Positions 1 to 56,642 of a stretch of 64,000 bases of DNA are shown here, in pieces. The stretch spans positions 126,480,001 to 126,544,000 of the forward strand of contig NC_058386.1 in assembly GCF_018350175.1 (NCBI RefSeq). Reading direction: 5' to 3'. The notes beneath the pieces are model-generated. The model was given only the letters and a program-made list of their open reading frames with translations. It was not told the origin of the DNA and searched no databases. Within the stretch, counting starts at the first letter, position 1. The number at the start of each line of letters is the position of its first letter. Made by a program: the position numbers and the translations under genes. This DNA comes from Felis catus (Eukaryota).

Positions 1-171
1 CCTTTTGTATAGGTAAGCGGGTAGAGCTCATCACGTGTTCTCAACATCCACCATAAGTAGACCTCAAGTAAGAGGACGTGACGCCACCAGGCCCCGCACA
101 TAGTCCATCCTGAATTTCCCTGGGAACTGGGGTGGCCGTGTGTATTAGGTCGTGGCTGTTTCAGACGGTGC

Positions 172-588
172 GTTTGTGTTCCCTCCCCCACATTAATATG
201 CTGAAGCCCTAAACCCCAGTGTGGCTGTATTCGGAGATGGGACCTTTGAGGAAGTAAGTTTAAATGAGGTCATAAGAATGGGGCTCTGGTCCAATAAGAG
301 TGGTGTCCTTATAAGAGAGACACCAGAGAGCACCCCCCCTCTTCCTCTCCCTCCCTCCCCGCCCCTACTCCCCCGCTCTCTCCTCACCTGCACTGAGGAG
401 AGGCCATGTGAGGACAGAGGAGAAGGTGGACCTCTACAAGCAAGGAAGCAAATTCTCACCAGAAGCTGAATTTGCTGGCACCTTGATCATGGACTTCTAG
501 CATCCAGAACTGTGAGAAAATAAATTTCTGCTGTGTAAGCCACCCAGTGTGAGGTACTTTGCTATAGCAGCTTGAGCAGACTAATACA
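172..588 (+). mobile_element. MaLR LTR (MLT1-type); mirror copy at ~20005-20421 (-)
   Basis: Typical MLT1 motifs: atgctgaagccctaaaccccag, aaatgaggtcataag, ggtgtccttataaga, aataaatttctgctg, and terminal gactaataca. Confidence 0.8.
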
Positions 589-829
589 ATTAATCGGCTT
601 TATCCAAGGAAAAAATAAGCTTTTTCATATCTTTATGACAGGAGCTAGTTTTGCAACTTGGAGCAAGGTGCCTACTGAAGTTAGGCTTCTACCCTCCCAC
701 AGAAACTGAAGATCGGGACACAATCTTGCTTGATGTTTACATTCCAAAGAGATGTTTCCCAGGTCCTTGAAGAACACATTCCTGGGCTATAAAGATGGCA
801 AGGGGCTCTTTTAGCCTTTTGTTCCTTAA

Positions 830-832
<3 letters not shown>

Positions 833-870
<38 letters not shown>

Positions 871-1058
871 TATTTATTCATTTATTTATTTATTTATTCA
901 GAGAAGGAGTGGGGGGGGCAGAGAGAAAGGGAGACATAGGATCTGAAGAGTGCTTTCTGCTGACAGCACGGAGCCCGATGCAGGGCTCAAAGTCATGAGC
1001 CATGAGATCATGACCTGAGCTCAAGTCGGATACTCAAGCACTGAGCCACCCAGGTGCC
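833..1058 (-). mobile_element. Carnivore tRNA-derived SINE (CanSINE) with (TTTC)n/(TTTA)n tail; mirror ~19531-19760
   Basis: Contains gagatcatgacctgagc...ctgagccacccaggtgcc. The microsatellite tail length differs between arms. Confidence 0.85.
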
Positions 1059-1633
1059 TCTACCCTTTAAAAATACTACCTGTTTTCAAAGAAACAAAGA
1101 AAGAACTTACAAGTCGTGTAAAGTAAATGCTTTAAGGAAGGGGAGGGGACCATCTCTTCCCATATTTTCAACAGGGAGAATGAAGCCTTTTACTTTATTC
1201 TTTTTTAATAAGCTGTATGGCCAATGTGGGGCTCTAACTCATGACCCCGAGATCAAAAGTCACATGTTCTATGGACTGAGCCAGCCAGGTGCCCCTAAGC
1301 CTCTTATTTTTAATGTGTACATGTTCTTAAAGCAGCTCTCTCTAAAATATGCTGAATCCTGAAAACTTGCTAAGGTCCCTGATTAGTTTGACAGCTCTTT
1401 TGTAGACGCCACTAGATTTTCTATATACGTAATCATGTCTGAGAATGAGGGGGGGTTTTCTTCTTTCTTGCCAATCTGGATGCCTGTTATTGCTTGATTT
1501 GTCTTCTCATCACGGGTTGGATCCTCCTGCTTCTCTGCATACCTGGTAATGTTGGGCTGGATGCCAGACAGTGTGATTTTTCCTTGGGTTCTGGATGGCT
1601 TTGTATTCCTGTTTTAAAGGTTAGAATTTTCTC

Positions 1634-1812
1634 TTTTTATTTTGGAGACAGAGAGAGCGGGGGAGAGGGGCAGAGGGTGAGAGAGAGAATCTTGAGCAGG
1701 CTCCACGCTCAGCACAGAACCCGACTCCGGGCTCGAACCCATGACCCTGGAGCCATGACCTGAGCCAAAATCGAGAGTCAGACGCTCAACCAACTGAGCC
1801 ACCCAGGTGTCC
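1634..1812 (-). mobile_element. CanSINE; mirror ~18779-18958
   Basis: Contains gagccatgacctgagcc...gacgctcaaccaactgagccacccaggtgtcc. Confidence 0.85.
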
Positions 1813-3189
1813 TTGGATGTCTTTGTATTCCTAAACATAGTCATGAGCTTTGCTCAGGGATGCTGGTAAGTGAGTGGGAAAAGATTGATCCTTTTGAGTC
1901 TTGGCTTTGAAGATTTGCTGCGTGGGACCAGAACAGCTCAGTGGAGGATTCGTTTTTCCCGCTACACTACTGAGGCAAGACCCTTCTGAGTGCCCTGCCC
2001 AAGGCCTCCAGAATTACGCGGTCTGTCCTCCCTGCCGGTGGGGATAGCCACCAGTCTCTGTCCTGCTTGAGGGGTCGGCACAATTACCTTTCCTCCTTTA
2101 AGATGGCTCTTTCTCTGGCTTCACATGGTTTGCTCACACACTTGTGCTGATCAGTGGTGTGCTGCACACTCCAGCAGGACCCTCTGTGTATACGTGGGCA
2201 TCTCACCAATCAGCACTTCCCTTCCCACTTAGAGCTGCGTTTTGTCTCTTAGAACCAAAGTACTCCAACTCATACAGATGAGAACGGTCAGTGGGTTTCA
2301 AGCAACAGACTCAGGAAATGCGGGGTGATTTGGGTGATCCGCAATGACTTACTGGGTGAAGCTGGGGGGAGGCCAACAGACTCCCATTCACATCGCAGGA
2401 CAGGGAAGCAGAGAACCCAACTGTCACCAGTGCGCAAGCTGGACCATGTGTTCTCCGAAGGCAAACTCTAGGTAGAGTTTGGGCACACGCTGCCGGGGGA
2501 AACCATTTTTAAAGGTGACCACGTGGTACACGGTCACGTCTGATGGTCTCGGGTAACCCAGAGCCTGGGAACCACTACTCCAATCTTGACATGATTGCGT
2601 CCAGACCCAGAAGGAACCTTCCGGCCTCTCTCTGACCTTGCTGGTGGGGTCCCTTAGCGCAGGCAGCCAAAGTGTGGAGACGTCAAGAAAAACCCACCTC
2701 AGAAAAGGTCCTGAGAGTTGTTTGTTACATTGCCATTGCAATGGTAGCTGGGTCTCCAACCTCCCCGCGTCTCTGTCCTTAATGCAAGAGCACCAAAGAG
2801 TGGCTTCCTCGCAGTTGTCGCGAGGATATCTGACATTGTTGGGCAGACTTGGAGAACCACAAATCCCTCTGAAATGTCACCCGGCTGACTGACACTTCTG
2901 TGAGCTTGCCTCCTGGCATTCCAGAAGAAACCAATTTCCTCTGCTTGGGAGAGAGTTTCTCTATGTCTCCTCTGTCCTTTTTCCTCTCTTCCTCCCTCCC
3001 TTCTCTTCTACTCACTCTCCCCTCCTCCTCCTCCTCCTCCTCCTCCTCCTTTTTCCTCTCCCCTCCTCTCTCTTTCCTCCCTTCACTCCCAATGTTCCAG
3101 ACCATGTCCTTCAGATCATTGCCCTAGACAGGCCATCCTGTACCACCCAACCTAAATTAGCTGGAACAACAAAAGTGCAAGATTAAACT

Positions 3190-3549
3190 GAAGGGGGGTT
3201 TAGAATTTGCTGAAGATGACATTTCACCTCAAGGGAGAAATACAGATTATTCGCTAAGTGGTTTGGGACACCTTGACTAAAACCTTTTGGAAAGAAAACA
3301 AACTTACATACCAATGTTCTTTCTCACGAAAATTACCTCCCAGGATGTTAAAGTTTTAAAGTACTAGAAGATGTTCTCAGTGAATATTTTTGTAATTTTA
3401 TACTGAGGAGGGCCCTTTCATAGGAAATGCAAACCGCAAATTATACTGAAACAATGGATCACATAAACAAAAAAATTTTAAGCCACTCTATACCAAAAGA
3501 CCAGGAGCACAGATAAAATGAAGAAATGGCAAGGAAAGGTATTTTCCAA
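3190..3549 (+). mobile_element. Old L1 fragment (mirror 17028-17400; a diverged related fragment lies at ~50620-51200)
   Basis: A-rich L1 ORF2-3' type sequence (gacatttca...agtactagaagatg...taattttata...), with the same motif order at 50620-50860. Confidence 0.55.
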
Positions 3550-4070
3550 TTATAACAAAACTTTGATATNNNNNNNNNNNNNNNNNNNNNNNNNNNNNNN
3601 NNNNNNNNNNNNNNNNNNNNNNNNNNNNNNNNNNNNNNNNNNNNNNNNNNNNNNNNNNNNNNNNNNNNNNNNNNNNNNNNNNNNNNNNNNNNNNNNNNNN
3701 NNNNNNNNNNNNNNNNNNNNNNNNNNNNNNNNNNNNNNNNNNNNNNNNNNNNNNNNNNNNNNNNNNNNNNNNNNNNNNNNNNNNNNNNNNNNNNNNNNNN
3801 NNNNNNNNNNNNNNNNNNNNNNNNNNNNNNNNNNNNNNNNNNNNNNNNNNNNNNNNNNNNNNNNNNNNNNNNNNNNNNNNNNNNNNNNNNNNNNNNNNNN
3901 NNNNNNNNNNNNNNNNNNNNNNNNNNNNNNNNNNNNNNNNNNNNNNNNNNNNNNNNNNNNNNNNNNNNNNNNNNNNNNNNNNNNNNNNNNNNNNNNNNNN
4001 NNNNNNNNNNNNNNNNNNNNNNNNNNNNNNNNNNNNNNNNNNNNNNNNNNNNNNNNNNNNNNNNNNNNNT
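3550..4070. other. Assembly gap (521 N); other gaps at 26309-26476, 47463-47594, 60536-60697
   Basis: Runs of n in the sequence. Confidence 1.
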
Positions 4071-4296
4071 TCATAGGTGAGAACTGATTGGCTACAGAAG
4101 GGACTGCTTGGTGGGAAAAAATCACAGGTCAGGAGGCATTACCAGTGGTCCGTGTGGACAGTTGCTCTGGGCATATCCGGAATTGCATTGTGGAGTAAAG
4201 GGGTGAAGCATTGTGAGAGAGCGCTTTGTCCTTCAGTGATGCCTTGAGAGGGTGGGCGGATTCAAAGTTGGGTCTCAGGTGGCTGGTGGAGGCCCC

Positions 4297-5461
4297 GTGA
4301 GGGCAGCAGACGAAGGCACGGGTGCCGTGGGCGTGGTGGTGGGCGCAGCAGGTGGTGGCCAGTGTGTGCCAGGTGGACCTCGTGGTGTCAGTGGCCCCAG
4401 AGTCCCTGGTGGTTCGGGTGGTGCCTGTGACCCTGGCCATCCCAGCAACCCCGGAGGCCTGAGCGATCCGGAAAGAACCAGCATTGTGGGAGAGGTAGGT
4501 GCCGCCGCTCTGGTGGCGCTCTCCAAATGGAGCGGGCGCCACCCTACACACCAGGTCCTGGTGGATGATGCCGCGCCTGGCGCTAGAGGTCCTGGAAACC
4601 GACTGCTTCAGTTGTATCCTATTCAAGGAGTCCCAGCGGGCTGGACGGCAGGGGGATGGGCTGGAGGTGGTCTGGCGCGCGGCGGGGTGGGGTGTGGGGG
4701 GGAGACTTGGGGAAGTGGAGTTGAAAGGGGAGCAGGAGGGAGCTCCGGGCACCTGGAGGGTATCGGCTAGGGTTTGGCCCGTGCTGACAGAGGATGGGGA
4801 GTGGGGTGGACCGCCTGATGGGGACTGAAGCGGTAGGGACAATGCTATCCGGGGTGGCCTGGCTGTATAGGGTGGGAGGTTGTGGACAGCCTGAGGGTCA
4901 GCCTGGGGTGGGGAAGGCAGGCCTCACTGAAGAGGAGGCCTGAGGCACAGGCAAAATTTAGTACTGTGGATGGTGCCTTAACCCAGTCTCCACCAGCACC
5001 CTCACTATACCTTTCCCCTCGGCCATGGATGCGGAGATTGCCCACAGGTTCCTGACTCCAAACGAGGAGCTCCAGGAGCCAGTTCGGGAGGAGCTCCATG
5101 TGAACGGCAGCATCCTGACTGTGTTAGTTCTAGAACGGTCCAGGGAGAGGGTGGTGGCAGGTGACCAGGGACAAGGTCAATTCCGGAGGAGCTGTAACGG
5201 AGACAAGGGAAACAGGAAAGGAGTGAGTCGAAGGAAGGAGTGTGGTGCTCTAGGATCGTTGCTGTGTGAAGGGGCGGAGCGGGGAATGTGCCCCACCGGC
5301 CCTCTAACTTGACTTATTTTTTCCTACCTCGTAGCCGCTTGACTGCCGATGACCCTGGCCAGCTCCAAATGTCCATCACCTCCTGTCTTGGCCAGCTTTC
5401 CCTAGTGATACGGGCCATGCAGATCATCATGCCCCCCTTTTTCACAAAGCCGCAGCAGTGA
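4297..5461 (+). CDS. CTAG1/CTAG2(NY-ESO-1/LAGE-1)-family gene A (Pcc1 domain); no in-frame ATG, GTG at homologous start; functional status uncertain
   Basis: Exons 4297-4613, 4997-5122, 5335-5461 splice to an open 189-aa frame. Exon 1 is Gly-rich and ends ARGPGNRLLQ(F). Exon 2 reads TLTIPFPSAMDAEIAHRFL...EELHVNGSILT. Exon 3 reads VRLTADDPGQLQMSITSCLGQLSLVIRAMQ. This resembles NY-ESO-1 ARGPESRLLEF...KEFTVSGNILTIRLTAADHRQLQLSISSCL. Both introns are phase 2. Confidence 0.7.
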
Positions 5462-6367
5462 AAAGGTGGCTGGACCCAACTCTGTGTCCCCCCCACATGA
5501 CAGTGATTCCTGCAGCAGCTGCCGTTTTCTTACTGAGGCCGCATCTTTTGCCTATACTGGCCCTTGGGTGCTTCAGATCCACATTTTTTTTTTTTTTTTT
5601 TTTTTTTTTTGGTGATCAAATGGTAACTGCTACTATTCTGTGTCTGGGTTTATTTTTAAAGCATCTACGCCTTCTCCTATTCTCGCCTTTGTTCTCAGGT
5701 AGGGGGAGAGATTCTGACATTCAGATACTCAAGTACTAGAAGGCAATTGAAGAAGACAAGTTAGGCGACGGGAGAAAAAAATTATGTCCTGTTATTCAGG
5801 ACATTAACTACTGTCAACATGTTAGAACTTTTGTTTTAGTTTTATACTAGCATGTACATAGTCATGTATAATACCTGCAGAGTAGGACTTTGTGGCTTCT
5901 CGGCCTTGATTCAGATCTGTGCAGAAGAGCGCTGGGACAGCTGGCTAGGTCGGCCCCACTGCCCATTCTATACTCCCGTGTCATCAGAGGCCTCATTCCC
6001 TGAGGTTCCGAACCCACAATTCTCAGAGCTCCTTGTGGTTGGCTCTCACTTGTATCATCCTTCCCCAAAGTGTTTTTCCAGTTTATTACGCTGCTGCTTG
6101 CTTCCCTGAAGTCCTGACAAGGGTCCTGGAGGAAAACAAAAAGGGGAAGAGGTCTCCCTGAGGTGGGGAGGGGACATGAAGTACATTACCCTTTGCCTTC
6201 CCCTCCAAGACTCTCTTATTTAGCACAACAGTGGGGCCACGTACAAGGCACCCGAGTGGCTGAGGAGGGGAATGGGCGACGCCCCGGTGCACGAGGTGAG
6301 TCTCTAAATCGGAGAGAGGAGGAACAGAGCCTTGCCTGAGGGAGAATTAGCAGTGTCAGCAGAGAGA

Positions 6368-6800
6368 GACTGAGCAGTGGAGAACGCCGTGACTCTATAG
6401 TTACGAATCTGTACCTGAGCGTCTCCAAATAGGTCCTCAGGACAAGTGAGGAAAGTAAAGGCACAGCTGCCTTGTCCTGGAGGCAGGTGTCACAGCAAGA
6501 AGGTGGCCAGTGTCTAGAGCGGCCTGTGGCTGGTGGAAGCATTTCAATGAGCAGTGTCACCAAAGAGCGCCTCAGCCTGAGCCTCGGACTGTCTCTGTCT
6601 GCCCTGTTCTTTGTCACTGCCTACGGGGCAGGCAGCTCTCATCTCCGGGCACGGGCAGGAGGAACCTGCAGCCGGAAAACAAGGATCTTTCAACACGTGC
6701 ACGTCTATAAACCCCGCCCTCGGCCGCCTCTCCAGCAGCTGCTGCCTCTCCAGCGGCTGCTCCCTCACCAATCGTCGCCACGCGCTGTGACGCGTGACCC
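6368..6800 (-). promoter_or_regulatory. Unidentified promoter-like element S (CCAAT, GC box, TATA-like); copies at 36840-37272 and 39790-40135
   Basis: On the mirror copy: ATTGG 36868-36872, GGGCGGGG 36921-36928 and TTTATA 36929-36934 in a CpG-rich setting. The third copy is truncated by L1. Confidence 0.4.
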
Positions 6801-7504
6801 CACTGCACCCACGCAAACCAGTCCCACCTCAGCTCCACCCCCTCCCCACACCCCTAGCCCCTCCCCAGACCTCGTGGGAGGCCGCCAGGCACCACGGCCT
6901 GTTGTCCAGAGGGCCCTGCCTCTTCCTTGGGCTCAGTGTCCCCAGCACGTGGGGCTCCACGACCTCGCAGCGGTTCGTGGAGGGAGATGGGCCACAGCCC
7001 AGACGGACACGGCCCCGCACCCCGTCCCCTTCCCCGGTACCGGTGGACACACCAAAGCGGCCTTTGGAGGGGGCGACTGAGCACAGGTGCGGATCAGATC
7101 GGCGGTCTGGGAAGGTCACGAAGGGGCTCCCGTCGGGGGGCAAGCCTGCCAGTAGCAGGCAAGGAGGAAAGGGATGGCGACTGGAGCTAAAGTAGTTAGT
7201 GGCCACGGAGAACAGGGATGCGGTCGCATAGGGAAAAACCACAGTGCAAAAGGGAAATCACTAAAATCCCAACTTAGGAAGCTACTGTATATGTGCACGG
7301 AAATCCTGCCACGGTAGCCTGAAGTGTAAACACCTCGTATGTCTGTGTGGTGGGATTGAGGGTGGTCCCCACTTCTTTTGTGTGCATTTCTCCCCCAAAA
7401 GGTTCAGAATGACTTTACATGACCTTTGGTGTTTTCAATTCTTTGACATCCTTGTGTGCGTGATCTCTACGCCCCACGTGGTGCGGCACTCACGACCCAG
7501 TGAG

Positions 7505-8610
7505 TGCTTCCACAAGTCAGGCTTGAGAGAGCAGATGATGCCATCCAGGGCGCCGGGCAGCAGCACTCCCCGCACCAACAGCACGACGAGGACCACGCAG
7601 GGGAAGGTAGCCGTGAAGTACACGATCTGGGGCGGGGGAGGGACGGGGGGGGTAACCTGCTCAGAAGGGGCCCTGCGGCCCCGCCTCCCCACTTAGGGGT
7701 CCCCAGCCTCAGCAGGGGGGCAGGCGGGCCACACTCCCCCCACTGTGGTACGGTCCACTCCGAGGTCAAGCGGGAGGCCAGCCTGCAGCCCCCCCTTCTA
7801 CTCCTCAGAGCCTGGGCTCCTCCCGAAGGAAGCGGGGTGCTCAGCTGGCCATCGGCTGCCCCCGCAAGGACAGGTCAGCTGTAGAGAGGGAGGGTGGAGG
7901 CAGGACCTTCCCCAGGTGGGGAGCAGGACATCGGCCTGGAGGCAGGTCCCATGCTTCCTGTGGTTCTCTGCACAGAGGCAGGGTCCTGGGCAGGACGGAG
8001 TGGACTGGGCCGGCCAGAGACAGAGGCGACAGCGAGGTGACCGCGAAGACCTCTGCCTCCGTCCCACCCTCAGCAGAGCAGGACAGGTAGGCAAAGGAGG
8101 GCCACGGGCCGGGTCCCCCCAGGCTGGCCGCAAAGCAGAGAGTGAGGAAGTAGTGAGTGAGGAAGAGAGGGAAACTGGGGCAGGGATGCCCGACACAGGC
8201 AAGTTCAGCTGGGGGTCGCCTGGGCCTGTCCCCTCAGGACGGAAGTCGGCTGGGCTGGAGTGTGGAGGTTGCGGAGCACTACCCAGGCACGCGTGGGAAA
8301 TCCACCGGGCTGGGTTCAAGGACCTGCCCCCGCCTCAGGCCCTGGCCCGGTCACCTCGCATGGCAGGGTCCACCTGCCCCCCCCTAGCGGAGACACCCCT
8401 TCTCCCCACCGGCCATGCTGCCCCCACCCCTGCCATCATCACCCACCCCGACCCGCCGGCCTCCAGCTGTACCTTTCCTGTTGACTTGACCCCCTTGCAG
8501 ACACAGAAGTAGGCCAGCACCCAGCAGGCCTGCAGACACAGGGTCACCTCCCAGTTGAGGGCCCCTGGCACGTCCAGCCCCCCCACCCCGAGAGCCGAAA
8601 GACTTTGTTC
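7505..8610 (-). pseudogene. SLC6A8: SLC6A8 (creatine transporter) fragment, exon 4 - intron 4 - most of exon 5
   Basis: Exon 4 at 8473-8610 ([36 protein letters not shown]) is 138 nt vs the canonical 133, so it is frameshifted. Exon 5 starts at 7626 ([31 protein letters not shown]) and breaks off before its donor. Confidence 0.93.
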
Positions 8611-9164
8611 CTGGGGGGAGGGGGGGACAGCCCGTCAGGGCTGCCGCAGCAGAGGGCAAAGCGACCGGGGAGCTGTCGCCGGGGCGGTGCTCCCCCGAGC
8701 CGCTGCCCTCAAGTCCAGGTGGGCCCCCCTGGGCCCCCGGCCCAAGCCCACAGCCATTGCAGTGGGAGGCAGGAGCCCGGGAGCCCCCGGCCGGAGGCCG
8801 GTCGCGCCCTCGGCGGTGTACCCTCCCCCAGGCTGGCAGGCACTAGGGGACTGACGGCGCCCGGGACCGACAAATGGTGAGGGAGCCAGGCCCATCCCTT
8901 CCAGCTCCCCTAGGGGCCGTGCGGGGTGTGCTCCCTGAGGACAGGCAGGGCCTGGGAGTGGCCCCTGCTCGGCATCCCGCGTAGGCCCCCCCCCCCGGCC
9001 CCCGGGTCGCAGGGCCCCCGGGACACGCAGACCCGAGCCGTACGGGGAGCCCACAGACAGGGACAGGCACGGTGCTGCCCAGAAGCGCCTGAGCGCGGCC
9101 CACGCCTCGATGCCCGGGACCGGGCGGGCGGCGGTCAGCTGGCTGCTGGCAAGTGCGCCCGGCT

Positions 9165-9398
9165 GGCGCCTGCGCAGACACAGGCTTGGGGGGAGGGGCG
9201 GGCCGGGCCGGAAACAGTCACGTGCCAGTGGCCTCACCAGAATGCTCTCGGGGACGTAGGAGCCCGACAGTGACGTCACGCGTCGGGGGGCGCAGCGTCC
9301 GGAACCAGCCTCCATCTCCTCGGGGTCAGCGTCGACCGGATCCAGGCTCTGCCGGCTCGGTGGCAACCAGCTCCGCGGGGTCTGTCTGCGCAGGCGCC
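9165..9398. promoter_or_regulatory. CpG-island promoter region of gene B (NRF1-like x2, GC box, E-box, full CRE); mirror 34238-34471
   Basis: GGCGCCTGCGCA 9165-9176, GTCACGTG 9217-9224, TGACGTCA 9271-9278, TGCGCAGGCGCC 9387-9398. Confidence 0.6.
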
Positions 9399-9524
9399 CT
9401 GGCCATCCCCGACAGCCTTGCGCGCCGAGGGGCCGGGCTTCGCGAGGCCTGCCAGGGGTCTCAGCGGTCGGCCGACAGTGGGCGCAGCGTAGCGGTGGGC
9501 TCTGAGGAGGCCGGTGCGGCGGCC

Positions 9525-10664
9525 ACGAGGGCCCCGGACGACGAAGCGGCCTCTCCGGCCCCGGACGACGGCGCGGAGGAAGTGGCGGTCACGCAGGCCC
9601 CTGACGATGACGGCGCGGACGGCGCGGCGGTCACGCGGGCTCCCGAGGGTGGCGCGGAGGACGCGGGGGCAGGCCCACAGGCCTCCGACGGAGGCACGGA
9701 CGGCCACGACCCCCAGCTTAGCCCCCGAGGTCCCGGTTGCCAGGGCAACTGCAGCCGCCACGATGGCGAGGGTGGCCCTGGCAGCAAGGGAGCAGTGGTC
9801 GAGGGGGCCTGCGCCCCTCCCCTGGCCGAACGGGCCCCGAGGGCCCTGGCCCCCGGTGGAGACGCAGCGCCGGCGGCGGCGGCGGTGACCTCCTCAGGAC
9901 TGCTGGAGTTGTATCCTTTCCGTGGAGCCTGTCTGGGCAGGGGCCGTGGCGGGGTGGCTGGGGAGCAGGGCGGCAGCCCGGGGACGGGACGGACGGGGGC
10001 GGGGGTGGGCAGCCTGGCGGGCCCCCAGGGTGGGGGAAGCGGCTCAGGGTGGGCAGAGGTGGCGGGAGGGAGCGCGAGTGTCCCGGGGGTAGAGGCGGGC
10101 CTCTGAGTGGTCAGGAGGCTTCAGGCCATGGGAACTCCAGGAGCCCGTTGTGCCTTAACCGGGTGCCTCCCAGCAGGCTCACTGTGTCTTTCCGGTCGCC
10201 CCTGGAGGCAGAGATGGCCCGCAGGGCCCTGACTACACACGTCCAACGCCACCGAGGGTTGGCTCAGAAGGAGCTTTGCGTGAGGGGCAGCGCCCTGGCC
10301 GTGTGAGTCCTCCAACAAGAGTATGCGCGGGACGGGTGGGCGGTGGCGGCGGGTGCCGTGGTCGCATCTCTGCCTTCCAGTGCCGTCGTGGAGGCCCCGA
10401 CGCACGCTGTTAGGTGGAAGGCGGGGGGGTGGGGGGTTGTGTGGGGGAAGGGGCTGGTGCCCTGCACCTCCACAGCAGGTCTCCCCTTTAACCGGATTTC
10501 CCTCTTCCCTCACTTCTAGGAGATGGACTACTGAAGACCCCATCTGCTTCCGAGTTTCCGTCAACTCCTTCTTGGACCGGCTTCCCCTGGTGATACGAAA
10601 CATTCGCGCCTTGGGGTCCCGGCCTCCGCGGCGCCTAGGTCCGGGAAAGGGGGCCGAGGCCTAA
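9525..10664 (+). CDS. LAGE3: LAGE3-like Pcc1-domain gene B; ACG at homologous start, no exon-1 ATG; functional status uncertain
   Basis: Exons 9525-9910, 10174-10302, 10520-10664 give an open 219-aa frame. Exons 2-3 read FRLTVSFRSPLEAEMARRAL...QKELCVRGSALAVRWTTEDPICFRVSVNSFLDRLPLVIRNI, resembling LAGE3 FTLSVPFPTPLEAEIAHGSL...VRWKAEDCRLLRISVINFLDQLSLVVRTM. It is convergent with a PLXNA3 3' end, as native LAGE3 is. Confidence 0.72.
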
Positions 10665-11955
10665 CCTGGTAGCCCTCACTGGGCAAGGCACGGGGCGTTG
10701 ACACTTGGCGTCCTCGCCACTTTACTATCGGGGGTCTAACGTTCTGCAGGTCCGGGCCTCGGTGGCTCTTGGCCCACTTCAGTTCCTTCCCTGCGCCCGG
10801 AGGGACGGGCGCTTACGTGTTTGTCACTGCACAACATGAAACTGAGCTACTCTTTTGTGTCCGAGTTTCTTCTCAGTTCCTGCGCCTCCACATTTTCTTA
10901 CCTTTGTTCTGGTGTTGGAAGGGAGGTTCTGGGAATCGTAGTCCAGCAGCCCAAGCTTATCGAAGACGACTCAGGGAGAGGAAAATCAGGTCCTATATTC
11001 AGCGGTAAATACTGCTGACGTTTTGGAATACGTTCCTAGTTGTATTTACCCGTTGAATGGATAGCAACGTATAACGTATCCATTTTCCAGTTTAGCGTTA
11101 ACTTTTCTCCGGATCCTTTTTGTTTCGTTTTGTTTTGTTTTTGTTTTTCCCCGTTGAACGTACTAGCTTTCCCACTCCCTAAAACCCTTCAAAAACTGTT
11201 ATCCAGGAGACACACAAATGTATTATTACATAATGTTGAGCAGTCGGGTCGTTCTCAGCTTTGCCCCTATTATGGGTCGTGTGAGTCAATGGGATTCTTG
11301 AACAGAAGTCTTTGCGCGAACAGTTACTTCCTTCAGATCGTTTCCAAGAGGTAGAATTCCCGCGTTCTATAGCTTCTCGGCACACAAGTGCTCTCCAGAA
11401 AAGGCGCCCCGCCGGCAGAAGTCTGGTCTCCCCGCATCACCAACCAGTAGGGTGGCTTCCTACCGAAGTAGAAGACTCCTTTTGTACCAGGGAAATAAGC
11501 ACGGAAACACTAGAATAGGAATTTTGGGGCTTACTGGCCTTGTTTCCGATGAGCAAGGGGGTGGTGCCACAAGTGGCTACGGGTTTGGGGGCGGGGTGGG
11601 GGGTGGTTAGCTCCCTCTGAGTAGCTTGTGTCTTGGAACCTCGCTAAACAGGAGTGCTAGCCTCACGAGGGTTCCCTCGGAGTTTCTACATGCATGGTCG
11701 TGATCTCTGCAAGCAAACACGGTTTTGGTTCCTTCCTTTCCGGCCTTGCCGGGGCTACGGGGGCGGGGGGAGGGAACAGGCTGACACTGGACAGATGGGA
11801 AGCAAGAGCAGGAAGGCACATGGCAGAGAACCAAATCCTGGATCCAGCCACGCCTGAAGACAGAACTATCCGCCCCCCGCCCCCGCCACAATCGTTCAGT
11901 TACACACATCCAGAAACTCTCCCTTTGGTTAAGCCAACATGAATCCTTTTTTTCT

Positions 11956-11995
<40 letters not shown>

Positions 11996-12019
11996 TCCCT
12001 TTCTCTTTTGTTTGAATGC

Positions 12020-12224
12020 TTTTATTTAGTGTTTGAGAGCAAGACAGAGACAGCGTGAGCGGGGAAGGGGCAGAGAGACAGAGAGGGAGACACAGAATCT
12101 GAGGCAGACTGCAGGCTCTGAGCTGTCGGCACAGAGCTCGACGCAGGGCTCAAACCCACGAACTGTGAGATCGTGACCTGAGCCGAAGTCAGACCCTCAA
12201 CCGACTGAGCCACCCAGGCACCCC
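12020..12224 (-). mobile_element. CanSINE (feliform type); mirror 31436-31640
   Basis: Contains gagatcgtgacctgagccgaagtcagaccctcaaccgactgagccacccaggcacc. Confidence 0.9.
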
Positions 12225-14481
12225 CGTCGTGAATACTTTTTTTTGCTTTTCTTTTTGTCTGTCTTCACTTGTAATAGAAAAGTCTTGTCCTTTATTGACT
12301 CGAGGAACCGTAGGTTTTCTTGTCACTTCACCTGAGAACGTGGCTCTCCCTTCTTTTAACGGAGAAACTGGGCTCTTTAAGTTTACAAAGGCATTGGCTC
12401 CTAGCTGGTAGGCCTTCAAGCCGTATGGTGGTAGAGTCTTCTGTGGGTAAGAGTCCAGAGAGGGAGGGGAGGGACTGCAAGGGGCAGCTGGAGGAAAGGG
12501 ACAAAGAGAAGGGGCACTGGGACCCACCCTTTCCGGATAGGGCTCCCAAGACTGGCCCGGAATTGTGGGGCCAGATCGTCAAGAGACCGGAACTTAGTGT
12601 GAGCCTCCCTCCCTCTCCCAGCAAAGCCCAGAGTTAGGCCACCGCCCTGGCCCCACAGACGGACTGCTGAAGGCGCCGGGCGGCCTTAACACGTCAGTCA
12701 GGTCACAAAACAAGTCGATTCCAACGCGTCCCCGGGCTCCCCTCCCAGAGACGAGCCAGAGCCCTGCCCCGCGGCCCGCCGCGTCAGATGTGATCCGGCC
12801 CGCATCTTCCACGGCCTCCTTCCCTCCCCTCTCCACCTTGCTCACTCTCGGATCCAGCCACACTGGCCTCCTCCCTTCTCTGAAACACACCAGGCCCAGG
12901 CCTGCCTCAGGACCCTTGCACTGCCTCTTCCCTGCCTGGACCTCTCGTCCCCCGGGGTTCCATCTGGCCCACTCAAATAGCATTCCTGGCCGCTCTCCTT
13001 AAGGTTGCGTCCCACGCTCTCCCCACCTGCATTACTTTCACAGGTGTCGGGGGGTAAGAAGCAGGTGGGCCCGTCAGCATGGAGGTGCACGTGCGGCAGT
13101 AAAGCGTCGTGGGACACGAAGGAGCTTGGGTGCTGTCGATGACCCTAGGGAGTCTTGAACGGAGCGGGACGGGATGCAGCTTACGTCTTATCAGGTTCCC
13201 GGTGCCTGCTGCGCTGGGAAGGGGACGAGGGCAGGCAGGACAGAAGTGGGGAGACTGGCACGCAGGCGAGAGACCCCCAGGCTGCGGCCAGTGGAGGTGG
13301 GGAGAAGGGAACGGGTTCCGACCGGATCTTGACGGGAGAGCCACCGGGGTTTGCTGGCACGGATCGGACGTGGCCCTGGACCTCCTCAGATGCGCGGGAC
13401 CCGTGCAACGGGTCACCCTTCCTCCCACAAAGGGAGCCCAGCTCCTCCAGAGTCCAACAGCCTCCCCACCTGCCTCCCTGCTCGCCGACCACCCACCTGC
13501 CACACACTGCCACCGTTTTCCCGACGTTTAATTCAGAAACAAGGTTCCAGGAACAACGACAAAGAAGCTCATGCCAAAACAGAGGGGACAGCTGGGTTTC
13601 CGGGACCACGCGCCGGGGCCAGATTCCTCGGAGGGGGAAGAGGGAACAGAGGGGTAAGGCACTGCCGCCTCGGCCACTCGGGGCGGGCGCAGGACAGGGC
13701 AGCGGGGGTGAGGGGTCCGGGCTGAGCGGGCACCACGCCGAGGAAGCTGGGCGCTCGGGCCTGGAGAAGGAGACTTCCAGAGCCCCCAGGCCCACGTGGG
13801 GCCCTGGCACGAACCCGCTCATAGCTCCCCAGGTGCTGGGGACAGGGCGCCCGAGAAAGGTACGGTCCGACCCCCGAGAAGTCCGGAGGGGATGCCGGGA
13901 CCCAGCCGCGGGGAGACCCCTGGGCGCAGCCACAGTCTGGGGACGGCTTCGCCGCATCACCCTGGGCGCCCCCCTCCTCGCCATCAAGTGCTGCTGGTGT
14001 CGGGGGCCCCTGCTCGGACCCGGCGGGGCCGGCCACGGCCAGGGGCAGGTGCCAGAGGCGAGGCCGAGGCTGACCGTGCCACCAGGGAGCCAGGACGACC
14101 CAAGGACAGAAGGGGCGTGAGGTTGTCCACATCCCAGAGAAGGGGCACGTGGTGACAGACGGACACGGTGAGGTGCAGATAAATTAAATAAATAGGTGGT
14201 TGGGGGTATAAACAGGAAGAGGGGGCAGGGGCTGGCACGACCCGGGGGCACGAGGGTGGGAGGGCGGGGATATTGCTGCTGCCAGGTCAGGACCCTTGGT
14301 CCCGTCACCATCGCCCCCACGCAGGGCCCAAAGAAAGGCACTAATGAAGGGGGCCCGGGTGTGCGCAGGGCACGAGAGTCCGGTGACCACCCCATCCCCG
14401 CCCCCGTGCCACCCGATCCAGGGCTCGGCCCCGAGGTCATCTCAGGCCTGGGACGCCCCCTCCTCACCGGTTCCGCCACCC

Positions 14482-14577
14482 TTAGCTGTTGCCGGACAAG
14501 AGGCTGATGGTCTGTTCCAGGTTTTGCCCCAACTTAGGCTTCCGACAGGAGGCGTCTCGGTCCAGAGCGGTGAGGAC
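14482..14577 (-). pseudogene. PLXNA3: PLXNA3 terminal coding exon, orphan duplicate (3'UTR-derived sequence continues to lower coordinates)
   Basis: Preceded by a pyrimidine-rich acceptor. VLTALDRDASCRKPKLGQNLEQTISLLSGNS* vs recalled human PLXNA3 C-terminus ILTALDRDASCRKHKLRQKLEQIISLVSSDS* (23/31 identical). No upstream PLXNA3 exon recognised. Confidence 0.85.
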
Positions 14578-14869
14578 CTGGGGGAGGAGGGCCCCCCCGG
14601 AGCCGGGCTGGCGAGGAGGGGCCGCTCCCTCCCTTGCCAAGCCGTCCTCCCCTGCCTGAGCTCTTTTGTCCCTCCTGCGTCCACGCACCCCGCTCTCTGC
14701 GGGTCCCCGGCACGTGGGAAGGGCTGCAGCCCCCCACCTCTGCACACGCTGCGACTTGGCCACCCCGAAGCCACCGCCTTCTCTGCTCGGCGGCCACAGT
14801 GCGGCCCTTCCCGGGAGTGGTTTGGACCCGCTGTCCCCAAACGCCCCGTCCCCTCCTGGCCCACACCCC

Positions 14870-16330
14870 ATCTCCCCATCCCCTCCTGAACCCCAAACCC
14901 GCACATGATCTCCCCGTCCCCTACTGACCCGGAATCTGGACCCAACCTCCAGGTCCCCCCCTGACCCCACCCCACACCCAATGTCGCTATCCCCTCCGGA
15001 CCCCATCTGCACCCCGCACCCGATCACCTTGTCCCATCCTGACCCCCACCCGACACCCAAATTTCCCAGCCCCTCCTGACCCCACCTTGCACCCAACATC
15101 CACGTACCCTGCTGACCCCCACCCCGCACCCCAAATCCCCATCCACTCCCGATCCGGAATCGGCACCCAACCTCCAGATCCCACCTGACCCCCACCCTCC
15201 ACCCAATCTCGCCATCCCCTCCTGACTCCCACTGACACCCCGCACCCGATCACCTGGTCCCTTCCTTAACCCCACCCGACACCCGAATTTCCCGGTCCGT
15301 CCTGACCCCACCCCGCACCCAAGCCCCATCCCCTCCTGAACCCCAACCCCACACCTGATCTCCCCATCTGCTACTGACCTGGAATCTGCACCCAACCTCT
15401 GCGTCCCCTCCTGACCCCCACTCCTGCCAAGCACCCGATCACTTCGTTCTCTCTTGTCCCCCACCGCCACCCTGCACCTGATTTCCCCGTCCCCTCCTGA
15501 CTCTTACCCTGAACCCGATCTCCCTCTCACCCCCTGACCCCCCCGCCACACCCCACCTCCCCATCCAATCCTGATCCCCACCCCTACCTGGCACCCGATC
15601 TCCATGACTCCTCACACCCACCCCTCCACTCACCTTGCTGGACACTCGTGATTCCCACTCCACACCTGATATTCCTGTGTCCTCCTGACCCCCACCCTAC
15701 CCCCCATCCAACCTCCGCCATCCTCTTGACCCCCACTGCCCACTCAACCTCCACGCCCCACCTGGCCCCCACCCCACACCCCAAATCCCCATCCACTCCC
15801 GATCCGGAATCTGCACCCAACCTCCAGTTCCCACCTGACCCCCACTCTGCACCCAACCTCCCATCCCCTCCTGACCCTCATCCCATACCCGACCTCCCTG
15901 TCCCGTCCTGACCCCTACTCCTCCCCTGACCTCCTCATCCACTCCTGACCCCCAACCCTACCGAGCACCCGATCTCCCTGACTCCTCCTGACCCCCACCC
16001 CCCACCCAACTTCCCGGTCCCTTCCCGACTGCCACCCCGCACCTGACATTCCTGTGTCCTCCTGACACACACCCCCACCCCGCACCCGAGTTCCTTATCC
16101 CCTCCAGACCTCCAGCCCGCACCCCTTGCCAAACCTTCCCGTCTCCTCCTGACCCCCACCCTGCACCCCGTACCCCATCTCCTCATCGCCTCCTGACTCC
16201 ACCTCGCACCTGGTCTCCCCGTCCCCTCCGGAACCACACCTCACATCCCATCTCCCTGCCCCCTCCCAACTCCCACCCTGCGCCTGACTTCCTCGACCCC
16301 TCCTGACCCTCACCCCACACCCGACCCTGT
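14870..16330. repeat. C-rich (G-rich on minus) degenerate minisatellite
   Basis: Dozens of variant units built on CCTCCTGACCCCCACCCCGCACCC(GATC/AA) and CCGGAATCTGCACCCAACCTCCAG modules. Confidence 0.92.
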
Positions 16331-17027: not shown

Positions 17028-19718
17028 ATATCAAAGTTTTGTTATAATTGGAAAATACCTTTCCTTGCCATTTCTTCATTTTATCTGTGCTCCTGGTCTT
17101 TTGGTATAGAGTGGCTTAAAATTTTTTTGTTTATGTGATCCATTGTTTCAGTATAATTTGCGGTTTGCATTTCCTATGAAAGGCCCTCCTCAGTATAAAA
17201 TTACAAAAATATTCACTGAGAACATCTTCTAGTACTTTAAAACTTTAACATCCTGGGAGGTAATTTTCGTGAGAAAGAACATTGGTATGTAAGTTTGTTT
17301 TCTTTCCAAAAGGTTTTAGTCAAGGTGTCCCAAACCACTTAGCGAATAATCTGTATTTCTCCCTTGAGGTGAAATGTCATCTTCAGCAAATTCTAAACCC
17401 CCCTTCAGTTTAATCTTGCACTTTTGTTGTTCCAGCTAATTTAGGTTGGGTGGTACAGGATGGCCTGTCTAGGGCAATGATCTGAAGGACATGGTCTGGA
17501 ACATTGGGAGTGAAGGGAGGAAAGAGAGAGGAGGGGAGAGGAAAAGGAGGAGGAGGAGGAGGAGGAGGAGGAGGGGGAGAGTGAGTAGAAGAGAAGGGAG
17601 GGAGGAAGAGAGGAAAAAGGACAGAGGAGACATAGAGAAACTCTCCCAAGCAGAGGAAATTGGTTTCTTCTGGAATGCCAGGAGGCAAGCTCACAGAAGT
17701 GTCAGTCAGCCGGGTGACATTTCAGAGGGATTTGTGGTTCTCCAAGTCTGCCCAACAATGTCAGATATCCTCGCGACAACTGCGAGGAAGCCACTCTTTG
17801 GTGCTCTTGCATTAAGGACAGAGACGCGGGGAGGTTGGAGACCCAGCTACCATTGCAATGGCAATGTAACAACAACTCTCAGGACCTTTTCTGAGGTGGG
17901 TTTTCTTGACGTCTCCACACTTTGGCTGCCTGCGCTAAGGGACCCCACCAGCAAGGTCAGAGAGAGGCCGGAAGGTTCCTTCTGGGTCTGGACGCAATCA
18001 TGTCAAGATTGGAGTAGTGGTTCCCAGGCTCTGGGTTACCCGAGACCATCAGACGTGACCGTGTACCACGTGGTCACCTTTAAAAATGGTTTCCCGGCAG
18101 CGTGTGCCCAAACTCTACCTAGAGTTTGCCTTCGGAGAACACATGGTCCAGCTTGCGCACTGGTGACAGTTGGGTTCTCTGCTTCCCTGTCCTGCGATGT
18201 GAATGGGAGTCTGTTGGCCTCCCCCAGCTTCACCCAGTAAGTCATTGCGGATCACCCAAATCACCCCGCATTTCCTGAGTCTGTTGCTTGAAACCCACTG
18301 ACCGTTCTCATCTGTATGAGTTGGAGTACTTTGGTTCTAAGAGACAAAACGCAGCTCTAAGTGGGAAGGGAAGTGCTGATTGGTGAGATGCCCACGTATA
18401 CACAGAGGGTCCTGCTGGAGTGTGCAGCACACCACTGATCAGCACAAGTGTGTGAGCAAACCATGTGAAGCCAGAGAAAGAGCCATCTTAAAGGAGGAAA
18501 GGTAATTGTGCCGACCCCTCAAGCAGGACAGAGACTGGTGGCTATCCCCACCGGCAGGGAGGACAGACCGCGTAATTCTGGAGGCCTTGGGCAGGGCACT
18601 CAGAAGGGTCTTGCCTCAGTAGTGTAGCGGGAAAAACGAATCCTCCACTGAGCTGTTCTGGTCCCACGCAGCAAATCTTCAAAGCCAAGACTCAAAAGGA
18701 TCAATCTTTTCCCACTCACTTACCAGCATCCCTGAGCAAAGCTCATGACTATGTTTAGGAATACAAAGACATCCAAGGACACCTGGGTGGCTCAGTTGGT
18801 TGAGCGTCTGACTCTCGATTTTGGCTCAGGTCATGGCTCCAGGGTCATGGGTTCGAGCCCGGAGTCGGGTTCTGTGCTGAGCGTGGAGCCTGCTCAAGAT
18901 TCTCTCTCTCACCCTCTGCCCCTCTCCCCCGCTCTCTCTGTCTCCAAAATAAAAAGAGAAAATTCTAACCTTTAAAACAGGAATACAAAGCCATCCAGAA
19001 CCCAAGGAAAAATCACACTGTCTGGCATCCAGCCCAACATTACCAGGTATGCAGAGAAGCAGGAGGATCCAACCCGTGATGAGAAGACAAATCAAGCAAT
19101 AACAGGCATCCAGATTGGCAAGAAAGAAGAAAACCCCCCCTCATTCTCAGACATGATTACGTATATAGAAAATCTAGTGGCGTCTACAAAAGAGCTGTCA
19201 AACTAATCAGGGACCTTAGCAAGTTTTCAGGATTCAGCATATTTTAGAGAGAGCTGCTTTAAGAACATGTACACATTAAAAATAAGAGGCTTAGGGGCAC
19301 CTGGCTGGCTCAGTCCATAGAACATGTGACTTTTGATCTCGGGGTCATGAGTTAGAGCCCCACATTGGCCATACAGCTTATTAAAAAAGAATAAAGTAAA
19401 AGGCTTCATTCTCCCTGTTGAAAATATGGGAAGAGATGGTCCCCTCCCCTTCCTTAAAGCATTTACTTTACACGACTTGTAAGTTCTTTCTTTGTTTCTT
19501 TGAAAACAGGTAGTATTTTTAAAGGGTAGAGGCACCTGGGTGGCTCAGTGCTTGAGTATCCGACTTGAGCTCAGGTCATGATCTCATGGCTCATGACTTT
19601 GAGCCCTGCATCGGGCTCCGTGCTGTCAGCAGAAAGCACTCTTCAGATCCTATGTCTCCCTTTCTCTCTGCCCCCCCCACTCCTTCTCTGAATAAATAAA
19701 TAAATAAATGAATAAATA

Positions 19719-19763
<45 letters not shown>

Positions 19764-23744: not shown

Positions 23745-24844
23745 TCAGCCCCCTTTTCCAGGCCGAGGCCTAGAAAAAATCGCGGGCACCAAGTGCTGCA
23801 TGGTCTGCACCACCATGAAAAGCTGGTTGAGCAAGGAGGCGGTGGAAATCTGCAGGAGGACAGGGTCTTCAGCAGTTAGTCGGCTAAAAGTAAGGGGAAA
23901 AGGAAATCACTTTAGATTTGAGAACTCCTGGCCCTCCTCACTCCAATCTCCCCCCTCAAGGTTACTCCTCCGTGTCTCCCTTAGAGCAACCCCTGAGGCT
24001 GCCACAGACCCGGGGCCCCATGTGCCTCCTTAGACCAAGCCCTTGGTGTCTGCACATCTCCAACCGAAGTGTCCGTCGGGCAGAGGTTACCTCAGCTCCC
24101 ACTGCCTCCCGCCAGCCCCTTCTAGAACTTACATAAACAAGTCACTGCCAATCACTGTGAGCTCCGTGTGAACCGCTTCGTGGTAGCATTCGGCACTCGA
24201 GGTCAGGTACTGGTAGGTCAGCTCCGCATCCACGTAACACAGGAAAGGCACCGTGAGGGCACTGGTGGACATTCGGTTAAGGCACATCTGGGTGGACCTC
24301 ATGGAGGAGGCTTCCTTGCCCATCGGAGGCCCGCCTTCCCCCAGACCGCCCTTAGGGCCACCCAAGACCACCTCGGCCGCCCCTTCAGGAAACGTGCATC
24401 ACGGCACCCCCAGCTGCTTCCTCCAGCCTCCCTCAGCCCCCCCCCACCACTTCCCTTCTGTGCCCCCGCAAGTCCCCGAAACCTCTCCCGCCCATCCAAC
24501 GGGGCCCCCACCTGCCTCCCCTCCCAGCCATTCCCCACTGCCCCCCCGACCTCGGGAGCTCCTTGGAAAGGATACAATTCCAACACTTGCTTTTCTGAGG
24601 CTTCCCCGGAGGCCGAGGCCGAGGCCGAAGCCTCTCCCCCCTGCCTTGGGGAGGGCGATGCCCCCTCGACCTGGGGAGCTTCCCCAGCCACGGTGCCCGA
24701 CGTCGCGGTGCCGTCCCGGCCTCCGGGATTTCCGGGGCCACTGGACGAGCCAGCACTACCCGTCGCACCACCGGCGCCGTCGTCCAGGATCTGCGCGCCG
24801 TCCGCGCCGTCCGCGCCGTCCGCACCGTCGCCCGGGGCCTGCAT
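23745..24844 (-). CDS. CTAG1/CTAG2-family gene C, intact, 178 aa
   Basis: ATG at 24844 (MQAPGDGADGADG...). Exons 24576-24844, 24133-24261, 23745-23883. Exons 2-3 read FALTVPFLCYVDAELTYQYL...TELTVIGSDLFIRLTAEDPVLLQISTASLLNQLFMVVQTMQ. AATAAA lies at 23581-23586 (minus) and an NRF1-like site at 24967-24978. Confidence 0.9.
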
Positions 24845-28800: not shown

Positions 28801-29082
28801 CCAGGAGGGGACGGGGCGTTTGGGGACAGCGGGTCCAAACCACTCCCGGGAAGGGCCGCACTGTGGCCGCCGAGCAGAGAAGGCGGTGGCTTCGGGGTGG
28901 CCAAGTCGCAGCGTGTGCAGAGGTGGGGGGCTGTAGCCCTTCCCACGTGCCGGGGACCCGCAGAGAGCGGGGTGCGTGGACGCAGGAGGGACAAAAGAGC
29001 TCAGGCAGGGGAGGACGGCTTGGCAAGGGAGGGAGCGGCCCCTCCTCGCCAGCCCGGCTCCGGGGGGGCCCTCCTCCCCCAG

Positions 29083-32971: not shown

Positions 32972-34111
32972 TTAGGCCTCGGCCCCCTTTCCCGGACCTA
33001 GGCGCCGCGGAGGCCGGGACCCCAAGGCGCGAATGTTTCGTATCACCAGGGGAAGCCGGTCCAAGAAGGAGTTGACGGAAACTCGGAAGCAGATGGGGTC
33101 TTCAGTAGTCCATCTCCTAGAAGTGAGGGAAGAGGGAAATCCGGTTAAAGGGGAGACCTGCTGTGGAGGTGCAGGGCACCAGCCCCTTCCCCCACACAAC
33201 CCCCCACCCCCCCGCCTTCCACCTAACAGCGTGCGTCGGGGCCTCCACGACGGCACTGGAAGGCAGAGATGCGACCACGGCACCCGCCGCCACCGCCCAC
33301 CCGTCCCGCGCATACTCTTGTTGGAGGACTCACACGGCCAGGGCGCTGCCCCTCACGCAAAGCTCCTTCTGAGCCAACCCTCGGTGGCGTTGGACGTGTG
33401 TAGTCAGGGCCCTGCGGGCCATCTCTGCCTCCAGGGGCGACCGGAAAGACACAGTGAGCCTGCTGGGAGGCACCCGGTTAAGGCACAACGGGCTCCTGGA
33501 GTTCCCATGGCCTGAAGCCTCCTGACCACTCAGAGGCCCGCCTCTACCCCCGGGACACTCGCGCTCCCTCCCGCCACCTCTGCCCACCCTGAGCCGCTTC
33601 CCCCACCCTGGGGGCCCGCCAGGCTGCCCACCCCCGCCCCCGTCCATCCCGTCCCCGGGCTGCCGCCCTGCTCCCCAGCCACCCCGCCACGGCCCCTGCC
33701 CAGACAGGCTCCACGGAAAGGATACAACTCCAGCAGTCCTGAGGAGGTCACCGCCGCCGCCGCCGGCGCTGCGTCTCCACCGGGGGCCAGGGCCCTCGGG
33801 GCCCGTTCGGCCAGGGGAGGGGCGCAGGCCCCCTCGACCACTGCTCCCTTGCTGCCAGGGCCACCCTCGCCATCGTGGCGGCTGCAGTTGCCCTGGCAAC
33901 CGGGACCTCGGGGGCTAAGCTGGGGGTCGTGGCCGTCCGTGCCTCCGTCGGAGGCCTGTGGGCCTGCCCCCGCGTCCTCCGCGCCACCCTCGGGAGCCCG
34001 CGTGACCGCCGCGCCGTCCGCGCCGTCATCGTCAGGGGCCTGCGTGACCGCCACTTCCTCCGCGCCGTCGTCCGGGGCCGGAGAGGCCGCTTCGTCGTCC
34101 GGGGCCCTCGT
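32972..34111 (-). CDS. LAGE3: LAGE3-like gene B' (mirror of B); ACG at homologous start
   Basis: Exons 33726-34111, 33334-33462, 32972-33116 with the same spliced protein as B. It has a private ATG in intron 1 at 33647. Confidence 0.72.

Positions 34112-53524: not shown

Positions 53525-56642
<3,118 letters not shown>

Follow-up and report, generated by a model that had tools for sequence, protein, structure and literature searches.

In the domestic cat, a LAGE3-like gene carries ACG at the very position where nine other feliform species have a methionine codon. This gene, termed here gene B, is a multi-copy, fast-evolving, X-linked gene made of three exons, in which an acidic N-terminal tail is followed by a Pcc1 domain. 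Comparison of the available sequences shows that the cat has undergone a young, lineage-specific loss of the start codon, a situation quite distinct from a triple non-AUG start arising by design. We consider it probable that this cat-specific event has turned gene B and its palindrome partner, B', into a young pseudogene or a strong hypomorph.

Organization of gene B

The window, by which we mean the whole stretch of 64,000 nucleotides that was analysed, contains a cluster of three-exon Pcc1-domain genes, A, B, C and D. The parts of gene B are as follows.

9525..9527, + strand: ACG at the ancestral start-codon position, Thr in cat and Met in nine other feliform species
9525..9910, + strand: coding part of exon 1, as delimited by the orthologues, with an acidic low-complexity tail and the donor TT/gtatcc
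10174..10302, + strand: exon 2, matching Pcc1 profile positions 4-44, with a tandem cagcag acceptor (alternative at 10177)
10520..10664, + strand: exon 3, matching Pcc1 profile positions 47-74, with a GKGAEA tail and a TAA stop

Both introns (9911-10173 and 10303-10519) are of the GT-AG type, the spliced frame is intact, and the exon boundaries agree with those of paralogues A, C and D as well as with the RefSeq models. Gene B was searched exon by exon, the exons being concatenated for translation, alignment and trees only, and two adjoining parts of the Pcc1 profile (PF09341) were recovered, at 16.9 bits in exon 2 and at 22.3 bits in exon 3, for a cut-off of 20.9. Two database proteins, P0035 and P0012, were used as full-length stand-ins; full-length scores are 47.5 bits for the cat RefSeq model, the exons of which are identical to those of B', and 51.6 bits for the Prionailurus orthologue. 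Domain score and three-exon layout, exons 2 and 3 sharing the domain between them, make gene B a member of the Pcc1 family. The original prediction had described the frame, both introns and the Pcc1 domain as intact, and so they are. It had also remarked that the exon-1 frame is devoid of ATG: indeed, that frame is open from 9093, just after a TGA at 9090, down to the exon-1 donor, with no in-frame ATG at all. At the other end of the first intron, the tandem acceptor (cagcag, 10170-10179) explains the paired RefSeq isoforms found in several felids, which read either ..LLEFRLTV.. or ..LLELLTV...

An ancient repeat in the N-terminal tail

The ACG belongs to a repeated motif, which has a counterpart at the start of gene C.

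9519..9539, + strand: unit 1 of the repeat (gcggccACGAGGGCCCCGGAC), homologous to the region in which gene C starts
9585..9605, + strand: unit 2 of the repeat, whose ACG, at 9591, encodes an internal Thr throughout the felids (VTQAPD)
9627..9647, + strand: unit 3 of the repeat, whose ACG, at 9633, likewise encodes an internal Thr throughout the felids (VTRAPE)
24842..24844, - strand: ATG of paralogue C, positional homologue of ACG 9525

The three strings previously singled out, gcggccACGagg at 9525, gcggtcACGcag at 9591 and gcggtcACGcgg at 9633, were found exactly there, in a single shared frame, each of the three ACGs being preceded by G at -3. Tandem Repeats Finder reports an array of period 42 at 9567-9666 (2.5 copies, 77% matches, score 112). 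The homology proposed between these units and the start of gene C was recovered in two ways, as a gapless alignment of the three units with the gene C start (mean column identity 78%) and as a blastn match of 9379-9549 to 24986-24820 in gene C (76% identity). At the protein level the repeat is kept in the orthologues of the hyena (MQAPSEG / LLAPVDG / TQAPDDG) and of the meerkat (MQAPDDG / SQAPNEDG / KQTPIDDG), so that it cannot be a chance pattern and must predate the felids. Units 2 and 3 carry an internal Thr in all nine felid species, cat included. From these alignments, a start codon only ever resided in unit 1, and what looked like start cassettes is an old in-frame repeat of the tail.

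The proposal of three tandem weak starts finds no support in this comparison. In units 2 and 3 the ACG is a conserved Thr codon like any other, and that of unit 1 is not conserved outside cat; furthermore, ribosomes that went past ACG 9525 and ACG 9591 would meet a strong out-of-frame ATG, at 9607, before they reached unit 3.

The start codon in other feliforms and the timing of its loss

Methionine is aligned to the cat Thr in Prionailurus, Herpailurus, Leopardus, Neofelis, Panthera onca, P. tigris, P. pardus, the striped hyena and the meerkat, as read from annotated proteins and from ORF calls on genomic contigs. Annotated orthologues of 216-222 residues start with Met at this site in Prionailurus viverrinus, P. 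bengalensis, Herpailurus yagouaroundi and Leopardus geoffroyi, and the same is true of those of Neofelis nebulosa, Panthera onca and P. tigris, also 216-222 residues long. In leopard, Leopardus and tiger, longer models and genomic ORF calls have Met there too. Around the site the alignment reads ..EEAGAAA[M/T]RAPDD.., the flanks of leopard being identical to those of cat and those of Leopardus and tiger near-identical. Conservation of ACG in related cats had been put forward as a point worth checking, and the answer is negative, all other felids examined having Met at the site.

ATG is therefore the ancestral codon, present in the outgroups and lost in cat, as is the rule for start-loss pseudogenes. 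By parsimony, a single T>C transition would have changed ATG into ACG on the Felis branch, after its split from Prionailurus, which took place some 6 million years ago. The earlier suggestion of a start loss that preceded expansion of the repeat is half right: the loss stands and the order does not, for the repeat occurs with a Met-started unit 1 in nine other feliform species, and the start loss must postdate it.

Over 219 codons, the cat branch has acquired nothing but M1T and an additional Ala, in a GCG run, a pattern that fits a recent loss as well as continued constraint. Apart from the start loss, B, B' and the remaining cat copies carry no disabling mutation, be it stop or frameshift, nor any sign of the relaxed constraint that a pseudogene may show, in a comparison with too little power to tell recent loss from constraint. 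As a rough estimate, neutrality would produce about one disabling event in roughly 660 nt over 6-10 million years; with so few events expected, the intact frame is uninformative as to loss versus constraint.

The palindrome and the catalogued cat copies

Gene B is located in one arm of a large inverted repeat, of which the relevant elements are the following.

4070..15523: palindrome arm with genes A and B; partner arm 28116-39559, 98.1% identical over 11.5 kb and 99.9% across gene B
32972..34111, - strand: gene B', with exons 34111-33726, 33462-33334 and 33116-32972, and its ACG at 34111-34109
33645..33647, - strand: ATG present only in B', within intron 1 and in the frame of exon 2, where B reads ACG (9989-9991)
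about 4.2-5.46 kb, + strand: gene A, a three-exon Pcc1-domain gene
start ATG at 52726, - strand: gene D, a three-exon Pcc1-domain gene
8874..8925, + strand: upstream exon with ATG in a cat RefSeq model of 364 residues, spliced to 9139 at an acceptor without a pyrimidine tract

B and B' differ at 2 of the 1901 positions across 9000-10900, and B' carries the identical three ACGs in the second palindrome arm. With near-identical copies in inverted arms, and with multiple copies in relatives (several accessions stand for a single protein in cat, tiger, Neofelis and Prionailurus), gene B has the copy arrangement of an ampliconic gene of X palindromes.

A protein search with the whole open frame 9093-10082 returned RefSeq and Ensembl models of Felis catus. 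Among these, P0012 (XP_044906338 and others) matches the B' exons exactly and P0027 has the variant of B at 9364. Every cat model has Thr at the site, in seven RefSeq accessions, five Ensembl/UniProt entries and one older MetaClust entry, and so do cat-like ORFs on 27 Logan/ENA/NCBI contigs (P0011, P0021-24, P0026); among all cat-like sequences found, models and contig ORFs alike, none has Met. The ACG can hardly be an assembly error since both arms, all cat models and 27 independent contigs agree. It could still be argued that the region, which is 76% GC and lies inside a near-identical palindrome, is hard to assemble, or that the sequenced animal carried a rare allele; against Thr in both arms, in at least two annotation pipelines, in an older database entry and in 27 independently assembled contigs, an error or rare allele is hardly credible.

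The annotation of the cat gene is remarkably unsettled upstream of the ACG. The RefSeq model just listed uses the ATG at 8874, other cat models begin at 6272 or 7539, and the Ensembl model P0034 begins, without Met, just past the stop at 9090. P0012, P0027, P0032, P0014, P0034 and P0041 have been labelled collagen alpha-1(I) chain-like, collagen alpha-2(I) chain-like or spidroin-2-like, with products of 363-451 residues that differ in their N-termini. These divergent N-termini and names look like annotation artefacts of the missing ATG, disagreement among pipelines on the start being the expected product of such a loss.

Several features of this neighbourhood deserve mention in their own right. 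The ATG in intron 1 of B' results from an arm-specific C>T change and opens a stretch of 62 codons within the intron, in frame into exon 2, so that a B' transcript retaining this intron, or initiated in it, would encode a complete Pcc1 domain; both intron-1 alleles occur in independent assemblies, with P0011 on 8 contigs and P0021 on 13. Gene A (4240-5461, with a partner copy in the other arm) also has an exon 1 without in-frame ATG, its frame being open from 4240, and P0105, a protein of the canonical clade, shows Met opposite a GTT of gene A located at about 4264; this alignment suggests that the ancestral start of gene A may have been there. Beside the main arm, a second inverted repeat, 1-3569 versus 17028-20592, is 99.6% identical, with an N gap at 3570-4069, which suggests either that the palindrome is nested or compound, or that the assembly was joined at the gap. 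Upstream of gene B, 1.7 kb of DNA (7506-9234) is duplicated 5' of the CTAG-type gene D (52890-54633) with 93.7% identity, the final 135 bp (9100-9234) being 97.8% identical and divergence setting in 3' of 9234. As this duplication runs up to 9234, B and D share a promoter-proximal block; beyond that point, the gene B leader resembles the gene C leader (76%). Twenty long ORFs, on both strands of the gene B flanks (5600-16000), gave no Pfam family match.

Leader, near-cognate codons and translation

What ribosomes would find on a gene B transcript can be read from the leader and from the first codons that follow.

9093..9524, + strand: gene B leader, open in the coding frame and without ATG in that frame, with near-cognates CTG 9399 (ggcgccCTGg) and GTG 9495
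9219..9278, + strand: putative promoter elements in a CpG island, with an E-box CACGTG at 9219 and a CRE TGACGTCA at 9271, the function of which is presumed
9242..9259, + strand: five-codon upstream ORF (MLSGT, then stop) in cat; leopard has Gln at the stop position and reads on
9607..9888, + strand: first ATG 3' of 9243, out of frame (+1), with A at -3, opening a 93-codon ORF that ends inside exon 1

The CpG island (9000-10000) has 75.7% GC and an observed/expected CpG ratio of 0.85, and the promoter region of paralogue D carries an E-box and a CRE as gene B does. ATG is absent from all three frames between 9243 and 9606. The in-frame near-cognate codons met before 9607 are CTG 9399, GTG 9495, ACG 9525, GTG 9582 and ACG 9591. 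The context of ACG 9525, gcggccACGa, has G at -3 and A at +4 and makes a fair Kozak sequence; a favourable context, without in-frame ATG from 9093 onwards, is what a gene with a non-AUG start would display. A second out-of-frame ATG, at 9763, also has A at -3, the ORF shared by 9607 and 9763 ending at about 9886-9888. The 92 nt at 9519-9610 are predicted to fold at -34.9 kcal/mol for a shuffled mean of -40.7 (z = +1.63), and a special hairpin downstream of the ACG was rejected since this is no better than shuffled sequence.

Near-cognate codons are used with a few per cent of the efficiency of AUG. Some in-frame initiation at such codons of gene B is biochemically to be expected, and use of ACG 9525 in cat is possible; the overall outcome to be expected is a strong reduction or a loss of the gene B protein, with ribosomes diverted to the ORF at 9607.

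Pseudogene, weak gene or annotation problem

Our preferred reading, a start loss that left gene B and B' as young pseudogenes or strong hypomorphs, would begin with the T>C transition on the Felis branch, after the Prionailurus split. The ACG would then have been homogenised into all catalogued cat copies, and gene conversion from arm to arm and from copy to copy, perhaps GC-biased, is probably what spread it. GC-biased gene conversion has been documented for primate X palindromes (PMC8981503). T>C being a change from weak to strong, a biased process of this kind could have helped the ACG to spread even if it was mildly harmful. As a consequence, the normal protein of 219 residues would no longer be made at its normal level, the first AUG for scanning ribosomes being that of the out-of-frame 9607, and residual output, at most a few per cent, would come from ACG 9525 or from the upstream in-frame CTG and GTG. 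The intact frame and introns, together with the 47.5-bit Pcc1 domain, count against a pseudogene and would also fit continued use of the gene. A rival reading is that gene B still functions, translation starting at ACG 9525 and/or at the in-frame CTG 9399, GTG 9495, GTG 9582 or ACG 9591, so that a Pcc1-domain protein, either normal or a little extended, would be made in reduced but selected amounts. That the ORF is unbroken in either arm and throughout the catalogued cat copies is in line with this, as is the lack of any cat-specific amino-acid change besides M1T and the extra Ala, yet neutrality, too, would be expected to leave an ORF open for a few million years or less. ACG 9525 has its G at -3, CTG 9399 sits in ggcgccCTGg, and there is no ATG from 9243 to 9525; however, the 92-nt stretch around the ACG has no folding advantage over shuffled sequence and provides no special downstream hairpin, and the strong out-of-frame ATG at 9607 would capture the ribosomes that scan past. 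The N-terminal tail may be dispensable, human LAGE3 having been studied both as the annotated isoform and as isoforms truncated at the N-terminus (PMC12718117), in which case a complete Pcc1 domain would result from any in-frame start located 5' of exon 2. On the other side, the near-cognate codon is not conserved among relatives, every other species examined having ATG, and we regard a functional gene B as rather unlikely. An extreme form of this idea would make virtue of the ACG: KEOPS makes t6A on initiator tRNA and, in yeast, loss of t6A doubles non-AUG initiation, ACG included (PMC4717488), so that cat copies translated only from ACG and neighbouring near-cognates would see their output rise as t6A falls, and act as a self-correcting sensor. 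If this were true, one T>C substitution in the Felis lineage would have created a sensor of KEOPS activity; we see it as very improbable.

There is also the solution adopted by RefSeq, an N-terminally extended protein of 364 residues initiated at the upstream ATG 8874, with an intron at 8926-9138. From 9093 onwards the frame is open, 8925 and 9139 can be linked in frame by a GT..AG pair, RefSeq gives such a model for several cat loci, and the start of Ensembl P0034 after 9090 hints at a transcript model that reaches that far 5'. Nevertheless, the acceptor at 9138 lies in G-rich sequence and lacks a pyrimidine tract, and the E-box and CRE common to paralogue D sit downstream of 8874. RefSeq, Ensembl and the older MetaClust entry each pick a different upstream solution, and their collagen-like and spidroin-like names are typical of low-complexity artefacts. 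The species that have ATG mostly have annotated proteins of 216-222 residues, a few longer leopard and Leopardus models being the exceptions. We find the extended protein quite improbable, and retain the start loss, with its pseudogene or hypomorph outcome, as the probable explanation.

A LAGE3-like lineage apart from canonical LAGE3

The Prionailurus orthologue matches human LAGE3 (PDB 6GWJ, chain B) with E = 1.2e-19, by way of RW.AED and NFLDQLSLV-type motifs. An all-against-library search retrieved 182 relatives. The nearest named ones outside felids are LAGE3-like proteins of meerkat, hyenas, sea lion, dog, colugo, deer, rhino, kangaroo rat and sloth, and those of squirrel and peccary are named L antigen family member 3. 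In a careful tree, built on a reduced set of 47 rows, B-type sequences form a clade of their own (100/99, bootstrap/SH-aLRT) beside the short-branched canonical LAGE3 rows; a CTAG-type clade (96/93) takes in genes A, C and D, and gene B groups with the canonical rows, not with the CTAG type (81/84). A quick tree of 137 rows agrees, and the Atlas has separate LAGE3, LAGE3-like and CTAG1-like clusters. The C-terminus of gene B reads ..LPLVIRNIRALGSRPPRRLGPGKGAEA, the canonical end ..LSLVxRTMQRFGPPVxR being absent. That gene B might be the canonical LAGE3 orthologue was considered and rejected, on account of this non-canonical C-terminus and of the separate 100/99 clade. The trees place gene B, rather, in a third lineage, LAGE3-like, placental-wide and evolving fast, which is distinct from housekeeping LAGE3. 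As canonical LAGE3 is a separate lineage, loss of gene B need not harm KEOPS, and may have been tolerated for this reason. A search with the Pcc1 part of P0035 did not return a canonical cat LAGE3, a word-limited method being uninformative on absence. The neighbours of canonical LAGE3 are PLXNA3 (tail-to-tail) and UBL4A; a plexin C-terminal motif was looked for and not found.

Significance

The missing ATG accounts for cat annotations that are both inconsistent and misnamed, collagen-like or spidroin-like. Beyond this practical matter, we have here a clean loss of a start codon by a single nucleotide change, dated to the Felis branch, and the presence of the same weak-to-strong change in all catalogued palindrome-borne copies fits the conversion, possibly GC-biased, of a probably harmful mutation. 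Domestic cat, with ACG, and leopard cat, with ATG in an otherwise almost identical gene, make up a natural comparison of ACG and AUG in vivo. These two species are routinely hybridised, and hybrid males are sterile; the ACG/ATG pair is then a candidate X-linked testis-gene difference between the parents of sterile hybrid males. Unless translation from the ACG is shown, the finding remains a modest one. A literature search found no article combining LAGE3 with Felis catus, and none combining three of the terms LAGE3, CTAG2, palindrome and X chromosome.

Comparison with known systems

The closest known systems are the genes listed in other felids as EKC/KEOPS complex subunit LAGE3-like, for example Prionailurus XP_043426221, Leopardus XP_045326519 and Panthera onca XP_060483495, which are the same three-exon gene as B, with a tail 94-98% identical and a Pcc1 part 95-99% identical. 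They share with it the N-terminal repeat, the Thr of units 2 and 3, and multiple copies on the X. They differ in having an ATG start and annotated products of 216-222 residues, whereas the cat has ACG, invented upstream starts and collagen alpha-1(I) chain-like names. Canonical LAGE3, the human KEOPS subunit, has the Pcc1 fold family in common with gene B, but gene B belongs to a longer-branched clade and a GKGAEA tail replaces ..RTMQRFGPPVxR. The CTAG1/CTAG2 (NY-ESO-1)-type genes A, C and D have the same exon structure, the same unusual gtatcc donor and an MQAP-type start region as in B, and they are located, as it is, in or beside the large X-linked palindrome; they differ by their Pcc1 part, only 38-40% identical to that of B, and C and D keep their ATG.

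Finally, gene B may be set beside genes with a genuine non-AUG start, such as yeast ALA1, which, as cited in PMC4717488, begins with tandem ACG ACG. Gene B and these genes have in common an ACG with a purine at -3 and no upstream in-frame AUG. The genuine cases keep their near-cognate codon across species, whereas the ACG of gene B belongs to one lineage, where it replaces an ancestral AUG.
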